Sequence record: NC_031126.1
Reading direction: 5' to 3' (one strand)
Length of the DNA stretch: 64,000 nucleotides
This document shows, piece after piece, positions 855 to 4,758 of this stretch. How positions within the stretch are numbered: the stretch's first letter is position 1; the number at the start of each line of letters is the position of its first letter. Both the position numbers and the translations under genes were made by a program. The notes beneath the pieces were generated by a model. The model was given only the letters and a program-made list of their open reading frames with translations. It searched no databases and was not told the DNA's origin.

Positions 855-986
855 ATGACCTTAGGACGAAAGTTACCAAGGCCAGCCCCGCCGCGATTAA
901 AGCGTCCGGAGTTGCCTCCTGCACCACCACCGTGCAGTGAATGCGCTTGCTGCAAGAAACGGCAAGCCACAGATTTAGGGAAGTAG
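855..986 (+). CDS. small Pro/Arg-rich, Cys-cluster peptide (43 aa)
   Basis: GAGAGG SD then ATG at 855; reads MTLGRKLPRPAPPRLKRPELPPAPPPCSECACCKKRQATDLGK*. Below the ORF-track cutoff; the last codons overlap tRNA-Trp. Confidence 0.4.
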   Translation: MTLGRKLPRPAPPRLKRPELPPAPPPCSECACCKKRQATDLGK

Positions 987-1052
987 CTCAGCAGGCAGAG
1001 CGCTGGTCTCCAAAACCAGATGTCGCAGGTTCGATTCCTGTCTTCCCTGCCA
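977..1052 (+). tRNA. trnW: tRNA-Trp(CCA)
   Basis: Acceptor AGGGAAG/CTTCCCT; anticodon arm CTGGT-CTCCAAA-ACCAG; T-loop TTCGATT; encoded CCA. Confidence 0.95.
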
Positions 1053-1118
1053 AATTTAGCCAACAGGAACATTATTCAACGCGGACGACACAAATTTGTC
1101 AATCGGCGGAGAATCCTC

Positions 1119-1340
1119 ATGAACCTGTATTTGCTAGAACGACTGGACAACGTCGGTTACGACGAGTTTGATTCCATAGTCGTTGCCGCTCCTACGGAGC
1201 TGGCCGCGTGTGCAATTCGTCCACGAGGCGGATGGGTACCAGACAACCAAGCCGAAGACGGGGTTACCCTGAGGATAGCGTTGATAGGTACAACCCATCT
1301 GCCCACAGGCATAGTCCACACGTCGTTCAACGCAGGCTGA
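1119..1340 (+). CDS. small phage hypothetical protein (73 aa, ends SFNAG)
   Basis: GGAGA SD before ATG 1119; MNLYLLERLDNVGYDEFDSIVVAA...SFNAG resembles a common small phage protein type. Confidence 0.75.
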   Translation: MNLYLLERLDNVGYDEFDSIVVAAPTELAACAIRPRGGWVPDNQAEDGVTLRIALIGTTHLPTGIVHTSFNAG

Positions 1341-1368
1341 ATAACCGGCGACTTTCGGGTCGCCAACC

Positions 1369-1444
1369 GGGGCAATGGCTCGAGCGGTCAGGCGCTAGAT
1401 TGCAAATCTGGATTACGGGGGTTCAATTCCCTCTTGCCCCTCCA
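1369..1444 (+). tRNA. trnC: tRNA-Cys(GCA)
   Basis: Acceptor GGGGCAA/TTGCCCC; U73; anticodon loop TTGCAAA; T-loop TTCAATT; CCA. Confidence 0.93.
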
Positions 1445-1590
1445 ATTCTTTAAAAACACATCTCGCCCGATGTGACAACTTTACAACAAACCCGTAGAGC
1501 CTTTCGGGGGTGTAGCTAGTAGGAGTGTTTGTTCACTCTACGGTCTTTCACTCCTGGGCGCTGGCTCACCCACCCAAAGGAAAAAATACT

Positions 1591-2016
1591 ATGTTTGGCT
1601 TCTTGAAAAAACGTGCTTCTCGCTCTGTTACCGAAATCAAAAAATTCGACAAACGCGACCTGGCACAGGCTGTTGTTAACGCAGCATATCTGGTAGCTTA
1701 CGCCGATGGCGAGCTGGAAGCATCTGAGAAAGCAAAAATCGAACAAGTGCTGCGCGCTAACCCGGTACTGTCTAACTTCCAGGGTGAACTGAACCAGATC
1801 GCTGGCACCATCATTGCACAGCTGGATGCAGACATCGGCATTGGCCGTCGTGCTGCCCTGCGTGAAATCGCCGATGTGAAGGGTGACCAGCGTGAATGCG
1901 AAGACGTGCTGGACGTAGCTATCGCTATCGCTAAAGCTGACGGTGAAGTTGAGCCGGAAGAAGAAGCGGTACTGAAACAAATCGCCGAAGCTCTTGGCCT
2001 GCGTTACGACGCCTAA
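1591..2016 (+). CDS. terB: TerB-family (tellurite-resistance-like) protein
   Basis: Two TerB motifs, AYADGELEASEK and AKADGEVEPEEEAVLKQIAEALGL; AAAGGA SD before ATG 1591. Confidence 0.88.
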   Translation: MFGFLKKRASRSVTEIKKFDKRDLAQAVVNAAYLVAYADGELEASEKAKIEQVLRANPVLSNFQGELNQIAGTIIAQLDADIGIGRRAALREIADVKGDQRECEDVLDVAIAIAKADGEVEPEEEAVLKQIAEALGLRYDA

Positions 2017-2019
2017 GCC

Positions 2020-2199
2020 ATGAAGCTGAAAACCAAGTTGTACATCGCGGCCGCACTGCTACTGATGTTGCTTGGCAACTTCGTAGGACGGGCATTCACG
2101 TTGCTCGCCTACGTCGCTGTAATTGGCTTAGTAGCATATCTCGTGTGGCCACTCATTAAGACTTATGCAGCCAAGGCTAAAGCTAAGGTCAAGTCTTAG
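2020..2199 (+). CDS. small membrane protein (59 aa)
   Basis: MKLKTKLYIAAALLLMLLGNFVGRAFTLLAYVAVIGLVAYLVWPLIKTYAAKAKAKVKS*: two hydrophobic segments and a basic tail; starts 3 nt after the terB stop. Confidence 0.7.
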   Translation: MKLKTKLYIAAALLLMLLGNFVGRAFTLLAYVAVIGLVAYLVWPLIKTYAAKAKAKVKS

Positions 2200-2249
2200 T
2201 GTGATTGCGGGGAGGGAACATTCTCCCCGTACGCTCGGGGCAAAAAAAT

Positions 2250-3032
2250 AACGAACGCTGGGGTTGGTTTTCCAACTGCTGCCGTGAGTACCACTCATTT
2301 GGCCGGGCTGGTATCCCGTCTGATACGGTATTAGCTGAGACCCAGCGCATACCAGTAAGTCGCTGATAGCCGGTTACACAAAGCACTACACCACAGAGTA
2401 GCGTGGGGGTAGGTAACTGACCGTAAACTAACTTACTCGATGAGAGAGCCCTTATATATGCAAGGACTAAAAGAGTTGGTGCGTGAGTTCATTCGTTCTT
2501 TAAAGAGCGTGTGGTCTTTCGTACGACACTGGTCACTTGCCCATTACTGGCTTACAGGCGGTGGGAGTTCCCGTGAGGGTTCCCGATACAGACATCTTCC
2601 TGCGTGGAAATATGTGTCCGTAACGGACAGGCCAGCACCGGACTGCTAAACCGCTAAGCTAACGCCTGTAATACTACAATCTGAAAATCTTTGATGGGAT
2701 TAAGTTCCTATAAAGTGTCGAAGCGGCTGTGTGTCGCTGGAGATAACCCCCCGTCGTGGGTCAAGTTATCCCAATGGTAATGTGAAAGAGGATGGTGCTT
2801 GGAGACGCTAAGACCGGCGGATACGCTGGCTCAGAAGAAGAAGTCCATCATCCTCATTCTCACTCTGAAAATTCAATTACAGTTTTATCCCTATATATGT
2901 CAATGATAACAAAGCGAATTCTAACGAACGAGTTTTCTTTGTTATATGTCGGGGAACCTCGTTGTTGCTGCACAGGGCGTTGCGTTGCGTACGCTTGCCG
3001 GTGTGTAGGAGTTGCGAGGTGCCCTGGCACCT
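2250..3032 (+). ncRNA. candidate large structured non-coding RNA(s)
   Basis: No convincing ORF. Many helices found by eye: 2256-62/2341-47, 2552-60/2663-71, 2631-36/2825-30, 2742-47/2765-70, 2788-97/2846-55, 2906-14/2937-45. Lies directly upstream of the tRNA array; strand assumed from context. Confidence 0.5.
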
Positions 3033-3037
3033 AATTT

Positions 3038-3123
3038 GGCGCGGTACTCAAGCGGTCAACGAGAGCAGACTGTAAATCTGTTGCCTTCGGGCTTCGTAGG
3101 TTCAAATCCTTCCCTCGCCACCA
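3038..3123 (+). tRNA. trnY: tRNA-Tyr(GTA)
   Basis: Anticodon loop CTGTAAA; long variable arm; T-loop TTCAAAT; ACCA end; one acceptor mismatch (C5-U68). Confidence 0.93.
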
Positions 3124-3129
3124 AATTCT

Positions 3130-3204
3130 AGGGGTATAGCCAAGCGGTAAGGCCCAGGGCTTTGATCCCTGTATGCTCTGGTTCAAATCCAGATGCCCCT
3201 TCCA
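3130..3204 (+). tRNA. trnQ: tRNA-Gln(TTG)
   Basis: Acceptor AGGGGTA/TGCCCCT; CAGGG-CTTTGAT-CCCTG; CCA. Confidence 0.92.
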
Positions 3205-3210
3205 TTTTAT

Positions 3211-3287
3211 TGTCTCGTAGCTCAGTTGGTCAGAGCGCTCGCCTGATAAGCGGGAGGTCAGTGGTTCAAGTCCACTCGAGACAACCA
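3211..3287 (+). tRNA. trnI: tRNA-Ile(GAT)
   Basis: Acceptor TGTCTCG/CGAGACA; loop CTGATAA; ACCA. Confidence 0.95.
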
Positions 3288-3291
3288 ATTC

Positions 3292-3367
3292 GGTTCTGTA
3301 GCTCAGTCGGTAGAGCACGCCACTCATAATGGCGCGGTCGTTGGTTCGATACCAGCCGGAACCACCA
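3292..3367 (+). tRNA. tRNA(CAT), elongator Met or Ile2
   Basis: Acceptor GGTTCTG/CGGAACC; CGCCA-CTCATAA-TGGCG; ACCA. Met versus lysidine-Ile2 cannot be resolved by eye. Confidence 0.9.
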
Positions 3368-3491
3368 GTCACGAGAACGTAACCCTGCGGTTTGGTTAGT
3401 CACCTATACTAGCGGTTACGCGATGCCTTTATCTGCGGGGCGTGAAATAGTGCGAGAGGTAGACTCTCTCAAGCAAGCAGAGGCAAATTCA

Positions 3492-3566
3492 GGTGCTATC
3501 GTCTAGCGGCTAGGATACGGCACTTTCACTGTCGGTACACGAGTTCAAATCTCGTCGGGAATGCCA
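3492..3566 (+). pseudogene. tRNA-Glu(TTC)-like gene with unpaired acceptor stem
   Basis: D, anticodon (CGGCA-CTTTCAC-TGTCG) and T arms (ACGAG-TTCAAAT-CTCGT) are normal and it ends GCCA, but acceptor strands GGTGCTA and CGGGAAT do not pair. Confidence 0.65.
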
Positions 3567-3572
3567 AACAAT

Positions 3573-3648
3573 TCTCCCATCATCTAGCGGTCTAGGATCG
3601 CCGCCTTTCGAGCGGTTAACCGGGGTTCAAATCCCCGTGGGAGAACCA
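3573..3648 (+). tRNA. trnE: tRNA-Glu(TTC)
   Basis: Acceptor TCTCCCA/TGGGAGA; GCCGC-CTTTCGA-GCGGT; T-loop TTCAAAT; ACCA. Confidence 0.9.
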
Positions 3649-3654
3649 AATTAG

Positions 3655-3820
3655 CAGGAGAGCTTTAGGGGTTCGTTTTCAGACGCCTAGGTTGTGGAAC
3701 GTTGCATCCCGCGTCAAGCCGGATGTAATTGGGGTTCGACTCCCCACTAGGATGCCCTAAAGGTAGCGCCGTCACAGGCGAGCAACTAACACGAGGCGTC
3801 ATGACACGCCTACTCCTGAG
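3655..3820 (+). ncRNA. structured RNA containing an internal tRNA-like T-arm module
   Basis: Perfect T arm TGGGG-TTCGACT-CCCCA (3730-46) nested in CCTAG/CTAGG, CTTTAGGG/CCCTAAAG and CAGGAG/CTCCTG helices; 8-bp stem in place of an anticodon arm. Confidence 0.6.
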
Positions 3821-3827
3821 TAACAAT

Positions 3828-3910
3828 GGAAGTAAAGCTCGCTGCTTCGGAAACTCATGGTGAAAGACCCGTGACCTTCCAGGCCGGTGCTATACCGGAT
3901 GCTTCCACCA
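3828..3910 (+). ncRNA. atypical tRNA-like RNA with acceptor stem and ACCA end
   Basis: GGAAGTA/TGCTTCC-ACCA plus three internal hairpins; T-loop is TGCTATA and there is no canonical 7-nt anticodon loop. Confidence 0.6.
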
Positions 3911-3916
3911 ATTAAT

Positions 3917-3994
3917 GGTGTACGTAGTTCAGTTGGTTAGAATTCTGGCTTGTGACGTCGGAGGTCGAGGGTTCAAGTCCCTCCGTACACCCCA
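3917..3994 (+). tRNA. trnH: tRNA-His(GTG)
   Basis: Encoded G-1:C73; acceptor GTGTACG/CGTACAC; loop TTGTGAC; CCA. Confidence 0.93.
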
Positions 3995-3999
3995 ACTTT

Positions 4000-4075
4000 A
4001 GTGCCGTAGTCGAGTGGCTAAGACGCTCCCCTGTCACGGGAGAGATCGTGGGTTCAAACCCCATCGGCACTGCCA
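4000..4075 (+). tRNA. trnD: tRNA-Asp(GTC)
   Basis: Acceptor AGTGCCG/CGGCACT; CTCCC-CTGTCAC-GGGAG; GCCA. Confidence 0.95.
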
Positions 4076-4080
4076 TATCT

Positions 4081-4168
4081 GGAGAATTGACCGAGAGGCC
4101 GAAAGTGCTCCCCTGCTAAGGGAGTGGTCCTTAGGGGCCCGAAGGTTCGAATCCTTCATTCTCCGCCA
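4081..4168 (+). tRNA. trnS: tRNA-Ser(GCT)
   Basis: Acceptor GGAGAAT/ATTCTCC; loop CTGCTAA; long variable arm; GCCA. Confidence 0.95.
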
Positions 4169-4173
4169 AACAA

Positions 4174-4266
4174 TGAACGTGGCCTTTTCATTTAAATTAG
4201 CATGCTATGCGGCATTGCTCCAGCAAATGAGAATCAGTCCTGCCTTAAATGGTAAGCGTTCACCCA
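4174..4266 (+). ncRNA. CCA-terminated structured RNA (non-tRNA)
   Basis: 7-bp terminal stem TGAACGT/GCGTTCA followed by C-CCA; inner CATTTAA/TTAAATG and GGCA/TGCC helices; no T-loop. Confidence 0.5.
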
Positions 4267-4271
4267 ACAAA

Positions 4272-4337
4272 GGTTTCTCCCGGTCGGTCTGGGGTCGTCA
4301 GTCAAATGGCGAGGTTGGTTCAAATCCAGCAGAAACA
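4272..4337 (+). pseudogene. degenerate tRNA-like sequence
   Basis: Canonical T arm GTTGG-TTCAAAT-CCAGC and GTTTCT/AGAAAC acceptor; anticodon arm TCGTCA-GTCAAA-TGGCGA has a 6-nt loop; no CCA. Confidence 0.5.
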
Positions 4338-4338
4338 A

Positions 4339-4439
4339 GAACGATGAAGTTAGAGGCATAAACACCCGACTCATAATCGGATAGCGGGTTACCCGGCGGG
4401 TAACTTGGTCGCAGGTTCGAATCCTGCCTTCGTTCGCCC
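4339..4439 (+). tRNA. atypical tRNA(CAT) with long variable arm
   Basis: Anticodon arm CCGA-CTCATAA-TCGG; T arm GCAGG-TTCGAAT-CCTGC; extra stem GGTTACCC-GGC-GGGTAACT; acceptor GAACGATG/CTTCGTTC; ends GCCC, not CCA. Confidence 0.65.
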
Positions 4440-4445
4440 TATTAC

Positions 4446-4522
4446 GGTTCCATAGCTCAGTTGGTTAGAGCGGCTGCCTGTTAAGCAGTAGGTCCCTGGT
4501 TCGAGTCCAGGTGGTACCGCCA
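4446..4522 (+). tRNA. trnN: tRNA-Asn(GTT)
   Basis: Acceptor GGTTCCA/TGGTACC (one U-U); GCTGC-CTGTTAA-GCAGT; GCCA. Confidence 0.93.
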
Positions 4523-4525
4523 CAT

Positions 4526-4595
4526 TTTGTGTTGCCCTTGTCCCGAAAGACATTCCGGAAAAATATCATTCATGGTCGGGGGTAACACAGAACCA
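4526..4595 (+). ncRNA. CCA-terminated long hairpin RNA 1
   Basis: TTTGTGTTGCCCT/GGGGTAACACAGA 13-bp stem then A-CCA; inner TGTC-CCGAAA-GACA hairpin. Confidence 0.55.
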
Positions 4596-4598
4596 AAT

Positions 4599-4662
4599 TC
4601 CGGTCACCACACCTTTTGTCGCCACCTGCATGGCTGCCTCCGGGGTGTGGTGGCTGGAACCA
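4599..4662 (+). ncRNA. CCA-terminated long hairpin RNA 2
   Basis: TCCGGTCACCACACCT/GGGGTGTGGTGGCTGGA ~16-bp stem then A-CCA; inner GCCA/TGGC hairpin. Confidence 0.55.
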
Positions 4663-4758
4663 TCTTTAGCCGTTTGTTTTTTTCTTAACTTACGGATAGA
4701 GCCCCAGTGGGGGAAAAGCCACTAACAACAATAGAAATAGCAATAGAAGGAAAGAACC

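Follow-up and report, generated by a model that had tools for sequence, protein, structure and literature searches.

Nine tRNA genes share a compact array with eight non-canonical elements

The jumbo Erwinia phage vB_EamM_ChrisDB (NC_031126.1) carries a tRNA gene array in which ordinary genes lie among elements that are not ordinary tRNAs. What are these elements, and do they constitute a single functional system? We analyzed bases 1-64000 of the record (the window). A preliminary description of this DNA had counted nine tRNAs alternating with about eight odd elements and had interpreted the latter as candidate decoys or regulators; the interleaved array is confirmed, while the interpretation is partly supported. 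ARAGORN predicted exactly nine canonical tRNAs within 3038-4522, all with an encoded CCA: tRNA-Tyr(GTA) (3038-3123), tRNA-Gln(TTG) (3130-3204), tRNA-Ile(GAT) (3211-3287), tRNA-Met(CAT) (3292-3367), tRNA-Glu(TTC) (3573-3648), tRNA-His(GTG) (3918-3994), tRNA-Asp(GTC) (4000-4075), tRNA-Ser(GCT) (4081-4168) and tRNA-Asn(GTT) (4446-4522), the final tRNA of the array. The first four (3038-3367) scored 48-71 bits against the Rfam tRNA model, which also recovered the other five and gave two weaker matches at 4340-4435 (39.6 bits) and 3501-3555 (29.9 bits). All eight non-canonical elements (E1, TLE, E3, E4, E5, E6, E7 and E8) were located, interleaved with the tRNAs. The whole forms a single tightly packed block on the plus strand, to which all coordinates below refer, with spacers of 2-9 nt that are mostly A/T-rich, like those of the tRNA genes, as had been noted. 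The array had also been extended upstream to 2200; nothing of the tRNA or odd-RNA kind was found at 2200-3037, a conserved and mostly unannotated region 5' of tRNA-Tyr.

Compared with shuffled sequence, folding gave z-scores of -3.3 for TLE, -3.5 for E3, -2.2 for E4, -3.6 for E5, -3.1 for E7 and -5.1 for E8, and folds no better than shuffles for E1 (+0.44), E6 (-1.1) and the spacer at 3368-3490 (E0, -0.36). The elements have different origins and include at least four unrelated families, each distributed differently; being mutually unrelated and independently distributed, they are not the one system that had been envisaged. Covariation in homologues, which had been named as a check, was found for TLE, E5, E6, E7 and E8, whose helices are kept by compensatory substitutions and thus do not reflect random decay; the same cannot be said of E1, a deletion scar. 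TLE, E5, E7 and E8 represent at least four unrelated non-coding RNA families whose helices are maintained by selection, and E3 probably belongs among such families. The reading that we favor, with a probability of about 0.6, is that the array consists of nine working tRNA genes together with products of recombination, tRNA(CAU) variation and selected RNA families, that the odd RNAs would be excised as stable species, and that TLE would act in trans as a mimic of the tRNA body.

TLE belongs to a large, mostly phage-borne RNA family

The main result is that TLE (3655-3818) is the local member of a widespread family of structured phage RNAs that is absent from Rfam. In ChrisDB, helix P1 (3655-3660/3813-3818) is followed by J1/2 (AG, 3661-3662), P2 (3663-3670/3755-3762) enclosing a variable tRNA-like insert (3671-3754) with a T-arm TGGGG-TTCGACT-CCCCA (3730-3746), J2/3 (GTAG, 3763-3766), P3 (3767-3780), the conserved single strand AGCAACTAACACG (3781-3793) and P4 (3794-3811). 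Our covariance model R1 matched this copy, the only one in the window, with 123 bits (E = 2.5e-31), and its helices were recovered by the single-sequence fold. The family has no match in Rfam 15 and no description in the literature that we searched. No co-occurring protein gene was found, so that no partner is indicated.

TLE is carried by about 40 IMG/VR loci and is represented by 64 metagenome matches, spanning unrelated phage families and environmental phages of distant hosts. Exact-pattern scans returned 44 stretches in IMG/VR and, among the matches listed, over 119 in metagenomes; of the pattern's 19 matches in 185,579 bacterial genomes, only three were true members. RNAalifold recovered the P1-P4 scaffold unaided, with compensatory double changes in 13 of 21 pairs and almost none broken, and model R1 detected held-out members with E-values of 1e-14 to 1e-26. 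Searching 80 metagenome loci with R1 yielded the 64 matches, an independent set in which, in an alignment (A10) fitted to the model, 98.7% of cells were paired compared to 70% in shuffled and 32-46% in slid alignments. Double-change cells numbered 320 compared to 91 in shuffles, and none of 500 shuffles attained the observed figure. Because P4 and the 12-mer formed part of the search pattern, their invariance is partly circular.

Invariant purine-rich strands (AG, GGUAG and AGCAACUAACACG) form the junction of the four helices, and the tip of P2 bears a variable module, often a cloverleaf with a canonical T-arm and without a usable anticodon loop or free CCA end. A canonical T-arm stands at a fixed distance from P2' in 20 of 45 inserts; ARAGORN called a tRNA in only three of the 45, and the insert of phiEa21-4 scored 50 bits as a tRNA. 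Small members (e.g., L034 and L030) have no tRNA-like insert at all, so the scaffold must do something in its own right, beyond what tRNA mimicry can explain.

Could the conserved elements be purely cis-acting processing or stability devices of a polycistronic tRNA precursor (RNase P or RNase E guide structures, exonuclease blocks, a terminator), with no role after excision? In that case TLE would serve as leader or cassette and control release of the embedded tRNA-like segment, the ends of which are indeed clamped by P2. Of 43 copies, 30 have a tRNA on the same strand within 1 kb; against such a role, the remaining 13 have no tRNA in the flanks examined, the tRNA-like cargo is missing from the small versions, and the junction strands are conserved beyond the needs of a processing stem. 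Moreover, in phiEa21-4 as well as an Acidobacteriaceae MAG, promoter-like sites end 10-12 nt 5' of P1. This predicted sigma-70-type promoter of its own in unrelated phages suggests that TLE most likely acts in trans. We thus regard an exclusively cis-acting role as possible but doubtful.

Long hairpins and tRNA-shaped RNAs of the array

Other points that favor cis action come from E5, E7 and E8. E7 (4527-4595) is an interrupted hairpin of about 70 nt with a basal helix of 10-13 bp, the conserved internal loop GTCCCGAA and a 3' (A)ACCA. Eleven phages together carry 15 copies, with a single one in the window, and among them is a paralogue 5' of Asp in the Machina lineage; the two paralogues have diverged and both keep the fold, with double changes in four pairs and with G-U pairs on the plus strand only. 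Its encoded CCA had been thought preserved, but other genera and its paralogues carry CCT, CCC or CAC instead. E8 (4598-4662) is an 18-bp hairpin directly followed by CCA, with compensatory double changes in three pairs among four phages. A terminator-like stem and T-run (4649-4684) overlaps its 3' arm and is the probable end of the array transcript. Both hairpins thus adjoin the last tRNA and overlap the terminator-like site, as cis-acting devices might, and the simplest shape that RNase P accepts as substrate is a hairpin with RCCA after it (PMC4201824).

E5 (4273-4336) is a compact tRNA-like RNA of 64 nt with a 6-bp acceptor, a 5-bp D-like stem and a canonical T-arm, lacking a variable region and an encoded CCA. 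Across three genera, RNAalifold found 22 pairs, six with compensatory double changes and one cell broken. No Rfam tRNA match was obtained, the sole match being tRNA-Sec (17 bits, E = 9.7). Other lineages fill the E5 slot with other anticodon-defective tRNA-likes, and in every lineage this slot ends 2 nt 5' of a CCA-less tRNA(CAU), an arrangement reminiscent of a T4-type dimeric precursor and hence also in line with a cis-acting role. E3 (3828-3910) points the other way, as its sequence is kept at two different array positions. This 83-nt cloverleaf-shaped RNA has a 7-bp terminal stem (GGAAGUA/UGCUUCC) followed by ACCA, an 8-nt "anticodon" loop and neither T-loop nor D-loop consensus, and gave no match to the tRNA model at E≤10. 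It occurs only in ChrisDB, SNUABM_9, SNUABM_10 and SNUABM_6, with 1-2 differences and diverged flanks, and in IMG/VR in ChrisDB alone; the evidence for E3 and E8 comes from four near-identical sequences each.

Several elements are therefore tRNA-shaped yet unable to decode, and selection acts on their helices, which speaks for the set of decoys or regulators that had been proposed, RNAs that in infected cells would sequester or mislead synthetases, sensors of uncharged tRNA or the nucleases of tRNA-targeting defence. Among the targets of known anticodon nucleases are tRNAs with GUN anticodons (here the four for Tyr, His, Asn and Asp) as well as tRNA-Glu and tRNA-Gln. The canonical set is rich in these targets, which would suit a counter-defence role for the whole locus, and presence is patchy among close relatives, as with accessory counter-defence genes: TLE, E3 and E8 are absent from Caitlin, Machina and Parshik, which infect the same host, so that none of the three is essential. 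However, known anticodon nucleases read the anticodon loop, and it is precisely this part that is not conserved in E5, where it measures 6-8 nt, lacks U33 and differs among relatives, nor in its positional homologues. Anticodon-loop equivalents are the least conserved parts of both E5 and the TLE inserts, which argues against decoys for anticodon nucleases specifically. The elements' lack of kinship and the scar nature of E1 also weigh against a decoy set, as does T4, in which deletion mutants of the tRNA region grow on common laboratory hosts, so that the analogous RNAs appear dispensable there. Altogether, we consider a decoy set improbable.

A deletion scar, a probable remnant and a modified tRNA

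Array content varies greatly among relatives; compared to pEa_SNUABM_9, ChrisDB has lost Phe, three odd tRNA-likes, Asp, Ser(TGA) and further segments. Such turnover would be expected if all non-canonical elements were neutral debris, functionless pseudogenes decaying after gain, loss and recombination of tRNA genes. E1 (3491-3569) fits this explanation. It is a ChrisDB-specific deletion scar, a dead Asp/Glu chimera, in which the 5' acceptor strand GGTGCTA derives from tRNA-Asp and everything from the D-arm onwards from copy 1 of tRNA-Glu. At this site SNUABM_9 has Asp-Ser(TGA)-Glu-Glu and SNUABM_4 an intact Glu; the chimera, which lacks a stable fold, was found in ChrisDB alone. It had been described as a Glu-like tRNA with an unpaired acceptor, which is accurate (at most 4 of 7 acceptor pairs form, and the Rfam match at 3501-3555 covers model positions 10-63 only, hence no acceptor).

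E4 (approximately 4174-4263) is tRNA-shaped and probably a half-decayed remnant left by recombination between neighbouring tRNA genes. All relatives conserve the 3' third (GAATCAGTCCTGCCTTAAATGG.AAGCGTTCACCC), the interior is hypervariable, and in the Machina lineage a 98-aa CDS takes up the 5' part. In Caitlin the terminal stem reads GGACG/CGTCC in place of GAACG/CGTTC, a covarying change, and stem and ACCA are exact; in ChrisDB they are a near miss. Because E4 ends in A-CCC-A rather than ACCA, the exact terminal stem plus CCA reported for four elements holds for three (E3, E7 and E8).

E6 (4339-4436) is the group's conserved, genuine tRNA(CAU) of Met/Ile2 type (Rfam tRNA, 39.6 bits), with a hairpin of about 24 nt inserted in the variable region. 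It lacks an encoded CCA and is mismatched (U-U) at 7:66. The long variable arm that had been noted is therefore real, but E6 is a tRNA variant and not a mimic. Its orthologue in relatives is a short canonical tRNA(CAU) directly 5' of Asn; the insertion is common to SNUABM_9, SNUABM_4 and SNUABM_6 and shows one compensatory pair (GTTACCC/GGGTAAC versus GATACCC/GGGTATC), and the tRNA stems show compensatory changes in relatives. E0, the spacer of about 123 nt 3' of tRNA-Met, has no stable fold; it is nearly invariant in an alignment of ChrisDB, pEa_SNUABM_9 and pEa_SNUABM_4, and nhmmer found weaker copies 3' of tRNA-Tyr in pSal-SNUABM-04 and SNUABM_6.

Neutral debris is thus a viable explanation for E1, a demonstrable scar, and for E4, and the shuffle-like folds of E1, E0 and E6 agree with it. 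In contrast, compensatory double substitutions with hardly any broken pairs in TLE, E5, E7, E8 and the E6 stems, the occurrence of TLE across unrelated phage families and among environmental phages whose hosts are distant, and the fold kept by both E7 paralogues speak against it; for TLE, E5, E7 and E8 it is refuted by covariation. As an account of the whole set, it is very unlikely.

A proposed model for processing and function

In the favored reading of working tRNA genes, recombination products and selected RNA families, the odd elements would be co-transcribed with the tRNAs and excised from the array transcript by host tRNA-processing enzymes. In E3, E7 and E8, RNase P would recognize a terminal helix of 7-12 bp with RCCA after it, and the remaining elements would be freed by cuts at adjoining tRNAs. 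Judging from their shape, we infer that the excised RNAs would accumulate as stable small RNAs, as do species 1 and 2 of T4. Between the last tRNA and the terminator, E7 and E8 would most likely punctuate processing and, as a cap, protect the 3' end of tRNA-Asn. TLE would offer, on a rigid scaffold, a mimic of the tRNA body (elbow and acceptor, not anticodon) to a host or phage factor that recognizes tRNAs, a presentation comparable to that of the tRNA-like domain in YrlA Y RNAs.

Comparison with known RNAs

T4 species 1/2 and YrlA RNAs are the closest analogues. The former (rnaC and rnaD) are small stable RNAs of unassigned function, their genes lying within a phage tRNA cluster and on its strand. 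The parallel drawn earlier holds: rnaD ends in ACCA like E3, E7 and E8, rnaC has a canonical T-arm (CCGGGTTCGAATCCCGG), and both come last in the T4 array, just as E7 and E8 are distal in ChrisDB. However, they show no sequence or model similarity (a search of the T4 tRNA region with R1, at E≤1, gave no match), the ChrisDB array has more such elements, of several families, and the known occurrence of the T4 RNAs is far narrower than that of TLE.

YrlA RNAs, found in bacteria and phages, contain a tRNA-like domain without a free CCA; in Mycobacterium smegmatis, YrlA is cleaved by RNase P and receives CCA, and among the main determinants named for this cleavage is a 7-bp acceptor stem (PMC4201824). 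YrlA (Rfam RF02553) and TLE are both modular non-coding RNAs that combine a conserved stem module with a tRNA-like domain bearing a T-arm, and one TLE member (L032) has a permuted topology of YrlA type and a weak partial YrlA match (23 bits). Unlike the single long stem of YrlA, the TLE scaffold is a four-helix junction, and the stem that opens to the scaffold is, in most members, the acceptor-like one and not the anticodon stem. The YrlA model had no match at 3655-3818 (E≤10), the Ro-binding motif GNCGAA(N0-1)G was not seen by eye in the ChrisDB copy, and none of ten scanned ChrisDB ORFs flanking the array matched Ro60/TROVE.

The eukaryotic mascRNA/MALAT1-type family (RF01684) likewise has a cloverleaf inside a longer transcript with leader-trailer pairing. 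Its match at 3684-3753 was sub-threshold (24.4 bits, E = 0.097), far under the gathering threshold of 42.5, and the resemblance comes from tRNA shape alone. Set beside canonical phage tRNAs and their pseudogenes, E6 is an orthologue of tRNA(CAU) and E1 a pseudogene; E5 keeps acceptor, D-like stem and T-arm but differs in lacking a variable region and U33, as E3 does in lacking the T-loop and D-loop consensus. Bacterial RNase P also has non-tRNA hairpin substrates, among them the 4.5S RNA precursor and the M3 RNA of phage phi80. Compared by shape alone, these resemble E7 and E8 as long hairpins with an RCCA-like 3' tail.

Nine canonical tRNAs are interleaved with eight other elements

The window was matched with 100% identity to Erwinia phage vB_EamM_ChrisDB (KX397366; Machinavirus; 244,840 bp), of which it covers bases 1-64000; the phage is called ChrisDB below. 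ARAGORN located nine tRNA genes (Tyr, Gln, Ile, Met, Glu, His, Asp, Ser-GCT and Asn) between positions 3038 and 4522 of the window, and further tRNAs for Trp and Cys upstream of this block. All nine encode their CCA and scored 48-71 bits against the Rfam tRNA model (RF00005), above its curated gathering threshold. Eight additional elements occupy the inter-tRNA gaps: E1 (3491-3569), a T-arm-embedded RNA that we refer to as TLE (3655-3818), E3 (3828-3910), E4 (approximately 4174-4263), E5 (4273-4336), E6 (4339-4436), E7 (4527-4595) and E8 (4598-4662). The spacers between elements measure 2-9 nt and are A/T-rich for most. ARAGORN, Rfam and these spacers therefore bear out the preliminary description, made from the sequence alone, which had nine tRNAs alternating with about eight other elements and separated from them by the same short A/T spacers as the real tRNAs. 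That description also let the tRNA-mimic array begin at position 2200, and nothing comparable was found in 2200-3037.

E6 (4340-4435, 39.6 bits) lies above the tRNA gathering threshold of Rfam and E1 (3501-3555, 29.9 bits) barely at it, the acceptor part of the model remaining unmatched. E3, E4, E5, E7, E8 and the TLE insert had no tRNA match in Rfam at E≤10, and none was called by ARAGORN; the only match of E5 was tRNA-Sec (17.2 bits, E = 9.7), and the only match of the TLE insert of the window was mascRNA (24.4 bits). Six elements folded better than dinucleotide-shuffled sequences (z = −2.2 to −5.1); folding was not clearly better than in such shuffles for E1, E6 and the spacer at 3368-3490. 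An exact terminal stem followed by N-CCA, previously ascribed to four of the non-tRNA elements, was retrieved in three of them (E3, E7 and E8, each with ACCA) and not in the fourth.

The spacer at 3368-3490 (~123 nt), which follows tRNA-Met, is near-invariant in three phages; pSal-SNUABM-04 and SNUABM_6 have weaker copies behind tRNA-Tyr. The spacer lacks both an ORF and a predicted fold, and may serve as a promoter for a phage polymerase or as some other signal at the level of DNA.

Among the canonical tRNAs of 977-4522 is the complete GUN-anticodon (queuosine-family) group of four, Tyr, His, Asn and Asp, together with Glu(UUC) and Gln(UUG). Known anticodon nucleases cut the Tyr, His, Asn, Asp, Glu and Gln tRNA classes. 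Because the set coincides with these target classes, the genuine tRNAs of ChrisDB may contribute to counter-defence no less than to codon supply.

E1 and E6 derive from genuine tRNA genes

We compared the homologous region in 13 related jumbo phages (Machinavirus, Erskinevirus and Seoulvirus) and found the array content to be very different among them. Relative to its nearest relative, pEa_SNUABM_9 (94% identity), ChrisDB lacks an 834-bp upstream gene, tRNA-Phe with three odd tRNA-like segments, and Asp and Ser-TGA plus two shorter pieces. The site of E1 is occupied by Asp-Ser(TGA)-Glu-Glu in SNUABM_9 and by an intact Glu in SNUABM_4. E1 itself consists of the upstream flank and 5′ acceptor strand of Asp (GGTGCTA in ChrisDB E1 versus AGTGCTA in SNUABM_9) fused to the body of Glu-1 from the D-arm on. 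At most four of its seven acceptor positions can pair, in agreement with the earlier recognition of a Glu-like tRNA whose acceptor is unpaired; it has no stable fold (z = +0.4) and was found in ChrisDB alone. E1 is a recombination scar.

The missing 834-bp gene codes for a TAXI/NMT1-like solute-binding protein, follows the gp7 homologue in all relatives compared and is cleanly absent in ChrisDB, where the junction lies at 2199-2236 and 2237-3035 is 94% identical to unannotated DNA downstream of the TAXI-like gene in pEa_SNUABM_9. We considered whether 2205-2649 is a disrupted version of the TAXI-like protein (278 aa) found in the relatives, and ruled this out since the gene is cleanly missing and 2237-3035 matches its downstream region. 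The annotated gp8 of ChrisDB (2205-2366) does not resemble the missing protein and is possibly a spurious ORF.

A tRNA(CAU) immediately precedes Asn in every relative, with compensatory changes in its acceptor and T stems, and a hairpin of ~24 nt in its variable region, in which one pair is compensatory, is common to ChrisDB, SNUABM_9, SNUABM_4 and SNUABM_6. Since orthologues precede Asn in all relatives and the hairpin has been added in four phages, E6 is a variant of a genuine tRNA; in the ChrisDB lineage it carries a U-U mismatch at 7:66, and its CCA is not encoded.

Two further sets of tRNA-like segments were seen in relatives. The tRNA-Phe/tRNA-Ile interval of pEa_SNUABM_9 (locus L002, 3537-3829) comprises ~290 nt with three T-arm-bearing segments, none of which is called by ARAGORN or present in ChrisDB. 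Genes of 94-121 nt annotated as tRNA-Ile(aat) in Stratton and Asesino (L005 3257-3376 and L006 3389-3509) and in Machina (L007 4416-4509) have a sound acceptor and T-arm, with 20-45 extra nt located in either the anticodon or the variable region, and represent a further kind of oversized tRNA-like gene in this phage group.

Structure is under selection in E5, E7 and E8

Covariation across related phages had been proposed as a check on the array, and compensatory changes were indeed seen in the TLE (see below), E5, E7 and E8. E5 folds into a compact 22-pair cloverleaf supported by six orthologues from three genera, with compensatory double changes at six pairs and a single broken cell. The loop at its anticodon position has 6-8 nt of variable sequence and lacks U33; no 7-nt anticodon loop with U33 is kept among the orthologues, whose loops differ (AGUCAAAU, ACCCAAAU, CGUAAUA, UAUAAUG and UGUAAA). 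Because the fold is conserved in the six orthologues and the loop is not, selection keeps the tRNA body of E5 and ignores the anticodon. Lineages without a recognisable E5 have, at the corresponding position 2 nt before tRNA(CAU), other tRNA-like genes, which in single folds show a good acceptor and T-arm and an anticodon loop of 3-5 nt or otherwise aberrant; as read from these folds, the same pattern of a kept body and an ignored anticodon may extend to these positional homologues.

E7 was found 15 times in 11 phages; these copies include a diverged second paralogue that lies upstream of Asp in the Machina lineage. Four of its basal pairs show double changes, and several positions alternate between U-A and U-G, which fits the + strand only and identifies E7 as an RNA read from that strand. 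Its encoded CCA is not conserved beyond Machinavirus and Asesino. In E8, which forms an 18-bp hairpin, three pairs show compensatory double changes among four phages. Both elements lie downstream of the last tRNA, and a terminator-like site (4649-4684) overlaps the 3′ arm of E8, whose main hairpin is followed by CCATC and, ~16 nt beyond, by a T-run.

E3 adopts a cloverleaf fold with a 7-bp terminal stem and ACCA, lacks the T-loop and D-loop consensus, and has an ‘anticodon’ loop of 8 nt instead of the 7 nt expected of a decoding tRNA. It occurs in four phages only, at two different array positions, with 1-2 internal differences while its immediate flanks diverge, a near-invariance that would fit either purifying selection or recent transfer. 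The terminal stem of E4 covaries and its 3′ third is conserved, its interior is hypervariable, and a CDS occupies its 5′ part in the Machina lineage; E4 looks half-decayed. Pattern scans of IMG/VR for E5 and E3 matched the ChrisDB phage group only, and a scan for E7 was discarded as its pattern was too loose and gave chance-level matches.

The TLE belongs to a widespread RNA family associated with tRNA genes

When the Glu-His gap was used in a distant BLAST search, unrelated phages of Serratia, Pectobacterium and Erwinia, both jumbo and mid-sized, gave matches to unannotated DNA, always inside or beside tRNA clusters. Exact-pattern scans built on the core common to these matches found 44 stretches in IMG/VR, more than 119 stretches among the metagenome matches listed, and 19 stretches in 185,579 bacterial genomes, 3 of which are true members. 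Cultured carriers include the phiEa21-4-like Erwinia phages, Hafnia phage SPARTY, Aeromonas phage phiA050, Citrobacter phage Tr1, Klebsiella phages phi1_175008 and FKP3, Yersinia phage fHe-Yen9-04, Pectobacterium phages CBB, Arno162 and Wc4, and Serratia phages 2050HW and Moabite. The hosts of the unrelated phages that carry the family comprise Enterobacterales, Aeromonas, alphaproteobacteria and Acidobacteria, and members also occur in soil and freshwater metagenomes. On some metagenome contigs (L250, L265, L269 and L284) two tandem copies lie 150-380 nt apart, like arrayed tRNA genes.

All members share the architecture P1-AG-P2[insert]-GGUAG-P3-AGCAACUAACACG-P4-A-P1′, in which P1 has 6 bp, P2 has 8 bp and encloses an insert of 12-192 nt, P3 is a hairpin with a GNRA loop in many members and is followed by a near-invariant single strand, and P4 has 5-6 bp. 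RNAalifold recovered P1-P4 unaided from an alignment of 32 diverse members; 13 of the 21 pairs show compensatory double changes, as many as five pair types occur at one position, and P1, P2 and P3 covary. A covariance model built from this alignment (R1) matched the window exactly once, over its full length (123.3 bits, E = 2.5×10−31), and recognized held-out members with E-values of 10−14 to 10−26. R1 found no member in Caitlin, Stratton, Asesino, Machina, Parshik, SNUABM_10, SNUABM_6, pSal-SNUABM-04 or SPN3US. Across 61 distinct metagenome members, in an alignment itself fitted to R1 and with P4 and the conserved 12-mer fixed by the search pattern, 98.7% of cells held standard pairs, compared to 70% in shuffles and 32-46% with slid partners, and double-change cells numbered 320 compared to 91 in shuffles (0 of 500 shuffles reached the observed value).

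Many inserts are tRNA-shaped: in 20 of 45, a canonical T-arm of 5 bp and its T-loop lie at a fixed distance from P2′. ARAGORN calls a tRNA in only three of the 45, and the insert of phiEa21-4 scores 50 bits as a tRNA; small members (84-140 nt) have only a hairpin or three-way junction as insert. A same-strand tRNA lies within 1 kb of 30 of 43 copies. An all-against-all BLASTP of 1030 ORFs revealed no co-occurring protein family in more than 5 of 42 loci, and among the ten ChrisDB ORFs flanking the array only TerB was matched in a Pfam scan. In phiEa21-4 and an Acidobacteriaceae MAG, a predicted sigma-70-type promoter (10/12 match) ends 10-12 nt upstream of P1; its position directly upstream indicates a stand-alone TLE transcript in both. 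E. coli genomes were also scanned for a complement of the conserved TLE single strand; nothing was found, a result that is uninformative at that query length and database size. On the minus strand, the P4 hairpin (3794-3811) together with the conserved single strand resembles an intrinsic terminator, a hairpin followed by CGTGTTAGTT; this score is common to ChrisDB, phiEa21-4 and the Acidobacteriaceae MAG and is probably a coincidence.

Comparison of the TLE and its neighbours with known RNAs

Rfam 15 searched at permissive E-values with the window and 12 family loci, including insert-less small versions, returned only tRNA or chance-level matches for the scaffold. tmRNA, RNase P RNA, riboswitch and ribozyme classes and group II intron domain 5 were each rejected, having no model match and misfitting helix lengths. 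A tmRNA-like tag frame and an SD-ATG inside P4 were likewise dismissed, as they could be read in the ChrisDB sequence only and were absent from the relatives. The conserved 12-mer is absent from the searchable literature, where shorter 11-mers match unrelated papers only; one large catalogue of structured RNAs from phages (PMC10690425) may include the family.

Two known systems come closest. Like T4 species 1 and 2, the ChrisDB elements are not tRNAs, share the strand of the phage tRNA cluster in which they lie, and show ACCA ends and a T-arm; E7 and E8 hold the position that rnaD and rnaC hold in the T4 cluster. The parallel drawn earlier thus extends to cluster position, strand and tRNA-like terminal features; as to homology with rnaC or rnaD, R1 had no match in the T4 tRNA region and none was seen by eye. 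YrlA, a Y RNA of bacteria and phages, has a tRNA-like domain without free CCA that RNase P cuts in one species (PMC4201824). The Rfam YrlA model had no match to 3655-3818 at E≤10, and its sub-threshold matches in the window are pairs of genuine tRNAs, a kind of false positive noted by the YrlA authors (PMC4201824). Y RNAs of this type are encoded beside a Ro60 (TROVE) gene and bound by Ro60; the Pfam scan of the ten ChrisDB ORFs flanking the array gave no TROVE match. One family insert (L032, 4616-4786) is a circularly permuted tRNA-like module with a T-arm, a loop-closed acceptor stem and a D-arm, whose anticodon stem opens toward the scaffold; this is the topology of YrlA, and the insert gave a weak partial YrlA match (23 bits).

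Processing and possible roles

The elements would be co-transcribed with the array tRNAs. RNase P could free E3, E7 and E8 by way of their terminal helix and RCCA, the remaining elements being released by the cuts that free the adjacent tRNAs, and the products would persist as stable RNAs like T4 species 1 and 2. E7 and E8 probably act as processing punctuation and as a 3′ cap for the last tRNA. The TLE is proposed to be a trans-acting scaffold presenting a tRNA-body mimic, for which YrlA offers a precedent (PMC4201824).

Taken jointly, we give roughly one chance in four to the reading that 3655-3818 (164 nt) represents an undescribed and abundant class of phage ncRNA acting in trans, and that the array maintains several independent tRNA mimics beside real tRNAs. 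The TLE would then combine a rigid four-helix scaffold and an invariant purine-rich junction with interchangeable tRNA-body mimics devoid of anticodon or free CCA, addressed to a tRNA-recognising host factor such as a defence nuclease, a processing or modification enzyme, or the ribosome. A role as defence decoys may exist as a special case. The array had been proposed to form a decoy system, and its elements are indeed structured and selected; they fall into several families and are not a single system, and since their anticodon-loop equivalents are poorly conserved, decoys for anticodon nucleases are less likely.

Ever since T4 species 1 and 2 were described, phage tRNA clusters have been known to encode stable RNAs other than tRNAs, which to our knowledge are still without an assigned function. 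The ChrisDB locus shows that such RNAs are not peculiar to T4 and that one jumbo phage holds several structure-conserved families. Stable tRNA-like RNAs of phage tRNA clusters and modular tRNA mimics are known kinds; the TLE family itself appears uncatalogued, and its support is sufficient for description as a new RNA family, the covariation being strong enough for a curated entry. Since cultured, tractable carriers exist, for example the phiEa21-4-like phages, in which the TLE has its own predicted promoter, deletion of the TLE, its binding partners and its structure are all testable.

In current annotation, embedded TLE modules are labelled as tRNA-OTHER, tRNA-Gln or spurious small ORFs. The first two labels are found on the embedded module of phiEa21-4-like phages, and small ‘hypothetical protein’ CDSs are annotated over family RNAs in pEa_SNUABM_9 (L002 4464-4601, minus strand), Moabite, Erwinia phage KEY and Klebsiella phage records; all are probably mis-annotations.
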